A stretch of 64,000 nucleotides of DNA, taken from the NCBI GenBank assembly GCA_964234715.1, contig OZ174284.1; one strand, 5' to 3'. Numbering within the stretch: position 1 is the first letter of the stretch; every line of letters starts with the position of its first letter. The position numbers and the translations under genes are program-made. Shown here in pieces: positions 47,690 through 50,870 of the stretch. The notes under the pieces were generated by a model. The model did no database searches, was not told the DNA's origin, and worked only from the letters and a program-made list of their open reading frames with translations. This DNA is from Podarcis melisellensis. Lineage: Eukaryota.

Positions 47690-47743
47690 AGAATACAACC
47701 ATTGAAAAGCAAGGGATTTTTTTCCACCCCCACTCCTTTTATT
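47690..47743 (-). promoter_or_regulatory. Candidate distal polyA site for the short isoform (AATAAA at 47738-47743 plus GU/U-rich downstream element)
   Basis: On the minus strand, AATAAA is followed by ttgcttttcaatggttgtattctgtaatagttgtatgtc, within a 3'UTR-like block (47480-47980). Confidence 0.4.
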
Positions 47744-50370
47744 GGCACCAGCAGCAATTGTGTCACAAAGGCAAATGCAGAGAGTGCTTGACACAAAATC
47801 CCAGGAAGACAGTACAAGAAAAAGGCGTAATACAGAGTTTGCCAGAAGCATGCCAGAGTTCAGCACAAGAAAGCGCCTGTCACAGCTTTCACCACCCCTG
47901 CACCAGCAGAAAGGGTTGCACGTTTGGGAGACAGTGTGCAAGAAGTGTAACCGGATAGCAGCAAACATCAAAAGCTAACTCACTTAAAGCACTCACATGT
48001 GCCACACACACTCCTGGGCAGACCAGGAGGTGGACATCAAGAGAAGATTTGGTCTATCCTAATGGCTAAATACTGAGCTTTGAGATCAGTTAATTTCCCT
48101 CTTTGTAACAGAATAGGGGAAGTCACAAAACACCTATAATGCAAGAGCCACACATGCCAGAGAGCGAAATTATCTCACAATAAAAATTGCTTATTGTTTC
48201 CTGACCATTATTCTAATGCCTCAGTACAGAAGAGCTCTCTTCTCTACTATTCAAGTTCGCCAACAAGTAGGGAAGGGAGGCGCATAAAATTTCATAGTAA
48301 CCAAGCAAATACTGATTGCAGATTTGTTTGAAACATGCAAATAGAGTAAGCACAGCTCCACTAGCATGCATTTACCTATTCCACGGGAACCAAGGGTCAG
48401 CTTGGAATGGGCAGCTGACCATGAACACAGGCCAATGGGAGGTGCAGATTTCTATTCGTTCCAAGACTGCACTTCTCCGCTTCCCCCACTACCATCCAAT
48501 TACATTCTATTAAAATCACATTTCCCCCCTTTTCAAATCACCATCATTTTCCACATTATGAAATGCCAATCTCTGCATGAATTCAAGTGTCCGAAACATG
48601 CAGTTAATAGAATTATATCTCTACCTCAATGGCAATTCAGAGTTTGCATGAGGACAGACCAGCCTCGTAGAGGACTGCCAAAGTCTGAAACTTCTCTGAT
48701 TAGGATACTTCAGCTGGAATTTAGGGACTGAAACGTTTTTTATCAGCTCTGAACACATAAAATGCTGGCTTCTGATTATCTGAAATATTTCCCCCCAGCA
48801 CTGTCTTTAACTATTATAATAGTTCATGGTGCTTATATAACACAAAGGTCAGAATTAATTATTCAATTCATTATTGCTGGATTCTACTTTGTAGTGATTA
48901 CAATATCTATAGACACATAAATAGGTATATGTAAACAAAGACACATGAAAGAGTCCTGATCTTAAACTTTAAACATATAGAGATTCCTCTAGCAGCCTCC
49001 TATGAAAATACACATTAATTTCCCATATTCTTTGAGTGATTAGCAAACTTATACATTCAAGTTAATTTTGAACTCAGCAGAGAGCCAAAAATTATCTGCT
49101 TTTTGCCCTGACCAGCAGGGAACTAGAACTAAAAGTTAGATGGCTTACAGGGAATGTAGGACAGGTTTCACTACAATATTAGGCCAAGAATAATTATTGC
49201 TAAACTGAAATTAACAAGGTAAAGAGCTGGTGAAATATGCTAGACCAAGTTGGCAACTCCAACTGCAATCAACTTCTGCAAGATTGTCAGTCTCATGACA
49301 ACAGAGGCAGAAGCTCAACACAAGCAGTATTCAGAGCCTGAACTCTTAAAAGTTATCTGAACAACCACATCCAATCTCTGATCAAGCAATTTAATCAGTG
49401 CAAAATTCCAGAACTCTGTTTCCACAGCCAAATGACTCCTATCCAATAGTTACAAGAAGCTGTGTTTTCACATTTGAAAGACTTGCTTAATACAAAATGT
49501 TTTTCAGAGCTTACTTAAATATTAAATCTCTTTCATTTTGCTTCAGGGTGGGAAATGCCACACAAATACAGAAACTGTACAATGCTATTGAGTGCACACA
49601 ACTAAAAATAAATAAATGAAAAAACATATCTTGAATGATCCTTCAATTGGATTTTTTCATACTATTTAGAAACGTTTAGCCAATGGAAGGGTAACAGTTT
49701 AGTTCCTACGCACGACTACGGCTATATAATTTAATTCTACATAAAAAAATAAAATCTAAATCTGTTTGGCTTGGAAGATTCCGCAACTAGAATCCAGTCT
49801 GGCCTCTTATCAAGTGCTATTCAAATTTAATCACCAAAAGGTCAAAGTAAAAGTCCGTCCAAACAAGAGTTTGTGGCACAAATTGAGTCTATCGCTCTCT
49901 CTCACACAGAGACAGGAATCAAGTTTAAGATTAACCAGAATGCCCTCAACAGCATACAGCTTGGTTTGTCAGCCCCAGTCCAGAACAGCAAAGCATATAT
50001 TTTGGGAGAAATTTCCACAACCTGCCAACACCAAGATCACCCAGAGTTAAAGGCTGTGAAAGACAACAAGGAATGTATAGCAGGCATGGTTCAAAACGTA
50101 TCAACAAGGTTTTGATGTTTTGCTATTCAGACACCATGTTGGTGAGAACTAGAAGATAGTTTTGCAGGTGAACACAGAAATCCAGTCAATGGACTTCTTC
50201 ATAACATGCTAATGCTATATTTAATTCACTCAGCAATGTAGATTTTGCAGACTAAGGGTTGCATCCAGCTACGTTCTACTCAGAGTAGACCTGATGAAAT
50301 TAATTAAGCTAAGTTAGTCGTGTCCATTAATTTCAATTGGTCTGTTCTGGGTATGACTAGCAATTTTTAA

Positions 50371-50376
50371 TTTATT
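50371..50376 (-). promoter_or_regulatory. Candidate proximal polyA signal (AATAAA) for the short isoform
   Basis: tttatt on +, about 165 nt downstream of the alternative stop. Such hexamers are common in AT-rich introns. Confidence 0.3.
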
Positions 50377-50540
50377 TGAACCTACCCAAGAAATCTTGAA
50401 CTGGGTATCTGTGTTTACCTGGACAGCATTCAGAACAGCAGCTTTGTCTTACAAACCATAATGTAATCCCACCACCACATAACCCCTAATTTCCTCCTGC
50501 ACACATGTTACACAGCGTTACAAAAGTTGTTATTACTGTA

Positions 50541-50782
50541 TTAATATCCTAGTGCTGATAAAAACTCCCCCATTATCTGCACAAGAACCTCTGACTGGAC
50601 ATAGATAAAGGGGACTCCAAAAGCCATCAGCTGGCACATGAAAAAGGAGTCCAAAGGATTTTGGGCTACATGTTGCCCAACTGAGGAAACTGTGTTTTGC
50701 AGGAGCTGGCTTGCCACCCTAACTCTGTCAAAGAGGTGGAGCGAGTACTGCATCACCCTGCCAAACAAGGAAGCAGAGCTAC
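50541..50782 (-). CDS. MICAL3: Alternative C-terminus of a short MICAL3 isoform (80-aa read-through of the donor, ending ...QNPLDSFFMCQLMAFGVPFIYVQSEVLVQIMGEFLSALGY*)
   Basis: The frame stays open 242 nt into the intron to TAA at 50541-50543. It resembles the C-terminus I recall for short human MICAL3 isoforms (..QNPLDSFFMCQLLAFGVPFLY..). Confidence 0.8.
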
Positions 50783-50870
50783 CTGGAGTCCTCTCTGACG
50801 AAGTTGAGATGGAGTTTGCACGTCCTGCACCGTCAGCCGCCATGTTGTCCTGCTGGATCCCTTTGCTGTC
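50783..50870 (-). CDS. MICAL3: MICAL3 exon (DSKGIQQDNMAADGAGRANSISTSSERTP), phase 0/1; composite internal/terminal exon
   Basis: ccctcag|GAC acceptor, weak donor CCAG|gtagct, 88 nt. Confidence 0.93.

Follow-up and report, generated by a model that had tools for sequence, protein, structure and literature searches.

In this study, we analysed a 64,000-nucleotide (nt) stretch of DNA from the lizard Podarcis melisellensis (GenBank assembly GCA_964234715.1, contig OZ174284.1; below, "the window" is this whole stretch), which contains no runs of N and carries MICAL3 as a minus-strand gene whose pieces were ordered via stop-free stretches. MICAL enzymes dismantle actin filaments by oxidation and are therefore tightly autoinhibited by a C-terminal Rab-binding domain. 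The element in question is the exon that follows the two LIM-domain exons of MICAL3. Its weak 5' splice site is either used, or skipped with subsequent termination, and this choice picks between two ends of the MICAL3 protein, one of them an 80-residue read-through tail. The following parts of the gene were located; slashes mark exon-intron boundaries:

53154-52968, minus strand: LIM-domain exon 1, 187 nt, Pfam LIM match with E=1e-7, boundaries read from the sequence
53156-53155, minus strand: acceptor AG of LIM exon 1, the donor of which is G/GTAAGT, both read from the sequence
51811-51723, minus strand: LIM-domain exon 2, 89 nt, with donor AAG/GTAGGC, read from the sequence
50870-50783, minus strand: constitutive part of the composite exon, 88 nt, directly after the LIM exon pair
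50785-50777, minus strand: weak 5' splice site CAG/GTAGCT, read from the sequence, the 9-mer being identical in six other loci
50783-50541, minus strand: read-through coding extension, an open reading frame (ORF) of 80 codons (G...Y) followed by TAA at 50543-50541
31307-31133, minus strand: next MICAL3 exon of the long isoform, start read from the sequence, 3' end approximate

A first-pass annotation, made from the letters of this DNA, had assigned the exon after the LIM exons to MICAL3, and the Pfam LIM match, the order of the exons and a downstream match to the starling MICAL3 isoform X3 (P0019) bear this out. LIM exon 1 is joined to the next exon in a named bird and a named orangutan protein (P0021 and P0020, described below), and LIM exon 2, which is 87% identical to its counterparts in two other loci (L001 and L008), accounts in the same two proteins for the residues that link LIM exon 1 to the composite exon. 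The 88-nt exon starts at 50870 behind the acceptor ...ccccctcag/GAC, has its last base at 50783 before the donor CAG/gtagct, and corresponds in the alignment to residues 1028-1058 of P0019. In the long isoform this exon is internal and is spliced to 31307, where the next exon shows 90% identity to residues 1055-1115 of P0019. The intron between 50783 and 31307 measures 19,475 nt, in agreement with the 19.5 kb given in the first pass. Its acceptor (31312-31296, minus strand) is a tandem one, ...ccccag/TTCCCAG/TG, and only the first AG leads to the long isoform because the second gives an immediate in-frame TAA. Further downstream on the minus strand lie Glu-rich exons, a large exon of 643 codons (12768-10840) and, near 2190 and 927, coiled-coil/bMERB-like exons; the N-terminal exons of the gene fall outside the window.

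Compared with the consensus GTAAGT, the donor of the composite exon has mismatches at +4 (G) and +5 (C), and it is embedded in codons for P-G-S-S, which are themselves conserved. Both the weak donor and the 80-residue read-through to the TAA at 50541 were found on the minus strand as first noted, and the exon together with the read-through translates into 109 residues.

A word search with these 109 residues returned 14 homologous ORFs from public assemblies and Logan, which sort into three groups by their final residues. The names lizard-like, bird-like and mammal-like used here reflect resemblance to the window, to the named bird proteins and to the orangutan protein. In all 14 ORFs, 22 residues in a row, reaching from before N-P-L-D to the Y after G-V-P-F, are constant except for one hydrophobic position and one I/L position. 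For the genomic comparison, seven distinct loci were used, two of which were also obtained in duplicate from a second sequencing run; the mammal-like P0012 (23 members in ENA metagenomes) and P0015 were excluded from alignments, folds and further searches, and the mammal-like ORF contigs P0011-P0016 and P0018 were not included. An AG acceptor with its polypyrimidine tract precedes the exon in all seven other loci, which are therefore genomic DNA and not complementary DNA. Six of the seven share the identical donor 9-mer, and the most divergent locus (L009, at a guess perhaps amphibian) has CAG/GTACCC instead. The read-through is open in every one of the seven, over about 69 to 81 codons (80 or 81 in six). 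Its first 74 codons are free of indels in six loci, where an indel occurs only near the C-terminal end, and L009 is without approximately 8 residues of the first helix while retaining the core.

Nucleotide identity between lizard-like and bird-like loci amounts to 0.2-0.3 in the upstream intron and 0.60-0.76 in the exon (0.75 at the acceptor), reaches 0.78-0.94 across the donor and most of the read-through, and drops to 0.42 in the final 30 nt and approximately 0.3-0.5 past the stop. Thus, the conserved block tracks the ORF and not the annotated exon of the long isoform. Pairwise ratios of nonsynonymous to synonymous divergence (dN/dS) according to Nei and Gojobori lie at 0.15-0.5 over 74 codons, with changes mostly at third positions. 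In a codon model, dN/dS (omega) was estimated at 0.37, and omega=1 was rejected with twice the log-likelihood difference (2dlnL) being 21.7; since kappa was also fixed in the null model, one to two degrees of freedom apply. In the core (codons 40-74), a single amino acid is found at 30 of 35 positions among seven sequences, and 15 of these 30 are encoded by more than one codon. Because of the open frame, omega, the core codons and the identity profile, the read-through tail is, as judged from this comparison, translated and under purifying selection at the protein level in the land vertebrates sampled. Selection on the tail had been proposed before; the dN/dS values, omega and the intact frame in all loci are as that proposal would have it.

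The other five frames on both strands contain 2-7 stops in every species, by which an antisense gene or a gene in another frame was ruled out as the cause of the conservation.

The same tail was found in annotated proteins. A profile search with the tail against 1.84 billion representatives gave six proteins only. One of them, P0015 (200 residues), contains LIM exon 1, LIM exon 2, the composite exon and the tail; as these parts are contiguous, P0015 is the product of splicing and of read-through at the donor. It falls into one 90% cluster with GenBank PNJ08532.1 (P0020), annotated as "MICAL3 isoform 14, partial" of Pongo abelii, a protein with CH and LIM domains and the tail at its end. The lizard exon and tail match P0020 in BLASTP with E=3e-39 and 59% identity over 103 residues (31/36 in the core). 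Hence, the lizard-human conservation asserted in the first-pass annotation stood in so far as it reaches a primate protein, that of the orangutan. A second word search, using only the tail of the orangutan protein, led to three named bird proteins: P0021 ("MICAL3-like, partial", Pterocles gutturalis), which shows correct splicing from the LIM exons into the tail, P0023 ("F-actin monooxygenase", Amazona collaria), with the tail at its end, and a mis-predicted Melospiza protein. No MICAL2-like protein was returned by the tail profile search, so that the tail is MICAL3-specific as far as this search reaches.

A further mammal-like copy of the tail, P0018 (a Logan ORF of 191 residues), shows local frame disruptions and reads on beyond the usual stop, for which decay of the copy, a duplicate pseudogene or an error of the assembly are conceivable causes.

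Going by these alignments, the annotated short MICAL3 proteins of a primate and of birds end with an exon to which the lizard exon is orthologous. Human RefSeq presumably also holds short MICAL3 isoforms, which we take to have approximately 950 residues. In human cells, reverse transcription polymerase chain reaction (RT-PCR) revealed a terminal exon of MICAL3 that contains a 5' splice site and can therefore also serve as an internal exon; use of this terminal exon leads to a shorter C-terminal region and rises on depletion of CELF1 or ELAVL1 (10.1101/373704). A proteomics survey lists human MICAL3 among the genes yielding two non-overlapping proteins (PMC4465641, S7 Fig). A switchable MICAL3 C-terminus is therefore already known: the short form is annotated in birds and a primate, and the exon switch has been shown in human cells. 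The short MICAL3 isoform itself is not new, and the lizard copy is an orthologue and not a discovery.

For the read-through to be used, the transcript would have to end within the intron. The following candidate signals were found after the stop:

50376-50371, minus strand: proximal AATAAA candidate, 164 nt after the stop, with A/C-rich downstream sequence (35% G+T)
47743-47738, minus strand: distal AATAAA candidate, 2.8 kb after the stop, with G/U-rich downstream sequence (60% G+T)
50516-50499, minus strand: GU/UGU-rich element, 25-45 nt after the stop, common to most other loci

These two AATAAA are the only ones on the minus strand between 50993 and 44586, and the distal one has the better downstream element. 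Both had been named as candidates before, and both are present, the distal one with G/U-rich downstream sequence as described, but neither is conserved in the other loci. The proximal AATAAA has no hexamer counterpart in the alignment in any other locus. At the distal site, two bird-like loci read AAGAGG or AAGAGA, and conservation runs on past the hexamer. Five ATTAAA lie between the two AATAAA, within 2.8 kb of the stop, none of them conserved. The GU-rich element at 50516-50499 could be a candidate site for an RNA-binding protein and, by analogy, might be what lies behind the effect of CELF1 and ELAVL1 on the human exon.

Two further observations were made in this part of the intron. An insertion of approximately 115 nt (50375-50260, minus strand), found in the window only, has the proximal AATAAA exactly at its start. 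It harbours a 19-nt palindrome (50273-50291) and probably represents a mobile-element fragment. A noncoding block (47894-47742, minus strand), which has the distal AATAAA at its end, is 70-73% identical to two bird-like loci and lies 2.8 kb past the tail stop here vs. approximately 3.4 kb in the bird-like loci. This block could be an element of the 3' untranslated region or an intronic regulator.

We favour the reading that this is a composite terminal exon of MICAL3 with two alternative protein ends, and give it a probability of roughly 0.8. When the donor at 50783/50782 is used, the 88-nt exon would be internal and joined to 31307, giving a long MICAL3 with the bMERB/Rab-binding domain. When it remains unused and cleavage and polyadenylation take place within the 19.5-kb intron, translation would continue for 80 more codons to the TAA at 50541. 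The short product would then be a monooxygenase-CH-LIM protein in which a helical hydrophobic tail replaces everything downstream. The analysis supports a short MICAL3 that stops after the LIM domain and so lacks the bMERB/Rab-binding domain, as claimed in the first pass, along with the Glu-rich region and the large middle exon.

Several points weigh against this reading. Use of the read-through in P. melisellensis is deduced from conservation, and the assignment of loci as lizard-like, bird-like or mammal-like goes by likeness. No conserved polyadenylation hexamer was found past the tail stop across the compared loci. Nothing clearly fish-like was found in the large profile search over the 1.84 billion representatives, and with only six representatives found in total, any dating of the tail is uncertain. 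The structure models of the tail are of low confidence, with mean values of the predicted local distance difference test (pLDDT) of 58 and 49 (see below). Also, the synonymous divergence (dS) of the tail is low, at 0.2-0.8 (50783-50544) vs. mostly 0.4-2 in the 21 codons upstream (50846-50784), a small and noisy sample. Constraint at the RNA level may therefore add to the coding constraint and account for part of the conservation.

In a rival explanation, the read-through would not serve as a protein end at all, but would be a conserved intronic regulatory RNA element or a degraded product of intron retention, with the open frame being incidental. Such an explanation would fit the low synonymous divergence, the GU-rich element just past the stop in most loci and the missing conserved poly(A) hexamer, but leaves unaccounted for that the frame stays open in every locus, where indels are confined to the region near the C-terminal end and L009 alone has a shortened first half, that variation in the core is synonymous only, and that conservation stops at the stop codon. 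Together with the rejection of omega=1, the spliced products with the tail in databases and the proteomic backing of N-terminal-only human MICAL3 products (PMC4465641), this makes it very improbable that the frame is incidental.

As claimed before, the tail has a 19-residue uncharged stretch (SFF...VQS) near the C-terminus, at residues 75-93 of the 109 and flanked by D74 and E94. The helix upstream, which had been called amphipathic-looking, is moderately amphipathic, with a maximum hydrophobic moment of 0.50 and hydrophobic residues at a spacing of 3-4. Over 19 residues, the highest Kyte-Doolittle mean amounts to 1.51 in the window and to 1.47-1.68 in the homologues, the usual cut-off for transmembrane segments being 1.6, and the unweighted Hessa sum of the hydrophobic stretch ranges from +4.5 to +6.6 kcal/mol. 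Residues Q, G, P, Y, S and E in and just after this stretch are invariant across the sample, and so is the segment that follows it, S-E-V-L-x-Q-I-x-G-E-F. These invariant polar and helix-breaking residues suggest specific packing of the tail core more than a lipid-facing anchor.

The first-pass annotation had proposed that the tail anchors the short form in a membrane. As a tail-anchor or re-entrant hairpin, it would hold the short form, then a constitutively active and Rab-independent actin oxidase, at the membrane of an organelle. The position of the uncharged stretch, ending 16-19 residues from the C-terminus (11 in orangutan), is right for a tail anchor, two lineages attain a Kyte-Doolittle mean of 1.62-1.68, and the coiled-coil-like amphipathic helix that precedes the stretch would resemble the arrangement in many tail-anchored proteins. 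The central G-V-P, at which the helix breaks in an AlphaFold2 (AF2) model, could form the turn of a monotopic hairpin. Most species lie at 1.47-1.59, however, and the window at 1.51, under the usual cut-off; the Hessa sum is positive (+4.5 to +6.6 kcal/mol, unweighted), conserved acidic residues follow the stretch, and the invariance of Q, P, G, Y, S and two E is more like that of a packed protein interface. The literature on tail-anchoring of MICAL3 gave no support either. With a hydrophobicity that is borderline or below the cut-off and invariant polar residues inside the stretch, we regard the proposed membrane anchor as a hypothesis that is less likely than not. If the tail did insert, it would fix a MICAL3 without Rab-binding domain permanently on one organelle, and the donor switch would pick between a Rab-gated soluble and a membrane-resident constitutive oxidase; this consequence is less probable still than the anchor itself.

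Protein docking or intramolecular docking appears somewhat likelier than a true membrane anchor. The tail may act as a specific docking module, with a protein surface or a membrane as its target, in which the amphipathic helix pairs with a hydrophobic one, interrupted at G-V-P, to form a hairpin. Such a helical hairpin could bind to the CH, LIM or monooxygenase domains of its own protein as a stand-in for the Rab-binding domain, to a partner, or to a second copy of the tail. We put this forward tentatively, at less than even odds; what docking and membrane anchoring leave of the odds goes to other roles of the tail. It would account for a 35-residue core of mixed hydrophobic and polar character that is almost invariant, for the spacing of 3-4 between hydrophobic residues of the first helix and for the two to three predicted helices, and it has a parallel in full-length MICALs, where the helical C-terminal domain docks on CH and LIM (PMC11315924). 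The AF2 model of the 109-residue exon and tail (10 sequences) has two long helices with a mean pLDDT of 58. In that of the bird CH-LIM-tail segment (P0021 residues 185-754), the tail forms three helices with a break at G-V-P and a mean pLDDT of 49, and the model gave no usable docking information. Against docking, neither model contains a confident pose, the tail is without detectable likeness to bMERB, and it has no relative in Pfam (no family at E<=1 for exon and tail), among solved structures (chance-level matches only in a profile search, E>=0.4) or in the ESM Atlas feature search (no usable relative). A complex prediction of the tail homodimer scored 0.00, which weighs neither for nor against binding.

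The exon and tail gave no sequence match to the bMERB/Rab-binding domain family, with no Pfam family and no structure relative below E 0.4.

In MICAL1, and in MICAL3 as judged by mutagenesis, the Rab-binding domain clamps CH and LIM and the enzyme is off until two Rabs bind; MICAL3 shares this mode of autoinhibition (PMC11315924). Without the Rab-binding domain, the short form should escape control by it, unless the tail substitutes. By analogy with that work on MICAL1 and MICAL3, the short form would escape the control described there, and the "constitutively active" short MICAL3 of the first-pass annotation is likewise an extension of it (PMC11315924). In the literature on MICAL3 isoforms, intronic polyadenylation and tail-anchoring, we found no paper on the function of the tail, which is in line with the earlier impression that it had not been described.

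For an isoform that loses the Rab-binding domain and gains a selected tail of 80 residues, a different control and localisation are to be expected. The core of approximately 35 residues is nearly unchanged in the lizard, the bird-like loci and the orangutan and is recognisable in L009, which makes it a precise target. For the long isoform, the tail is intron sequence, so that changes can be made to it with the long protein left intact. The remaining interest lies in the almost invariant core of the tail.

Among known systems, canonical MICAL2 follows the same domain logic as the short MICAL3: it is a monooxygenase-CH-LIM protein without bMERB and is expected to stand outside the autoinhibition that Rabs relieve. 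Tail-anchored membrane proteins resemble the short MICAL3 in having a single hydrophobic stretch near the C-terminus after an amphipathic helix, whereas the MICAL3 tail differs from them by its borderline hydrophobicity, its invariant polar and helix-breaking residues and the conserved acidic segment that follows. The annotated short MICAL3 proteins (PNJ08532.1 and that of Pterocles) have the same exon after the LIM exons and the same read-through past the P-G-S donor, and the core in the bird short MICAL3 proteins is near-identical to that of the lizard tail. The groups of short MICAL3 (lizard-like, bird-like, mammal-like and the most divergent one) differ in their last 6-7 residues and in the exact position of the stop. 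Composite terminal exons regulated by CELF1 and ELAVL1, as in human MICAL3, SPTBN1 and PPP3CB (10.1101/373704), are likewise single exons that are either internal or terminal. In the lizard, a GU-rich element likewise follows the stop, and by analogy with the human exons, the switch may be regulated by CELF and ELAV proteins here, too.

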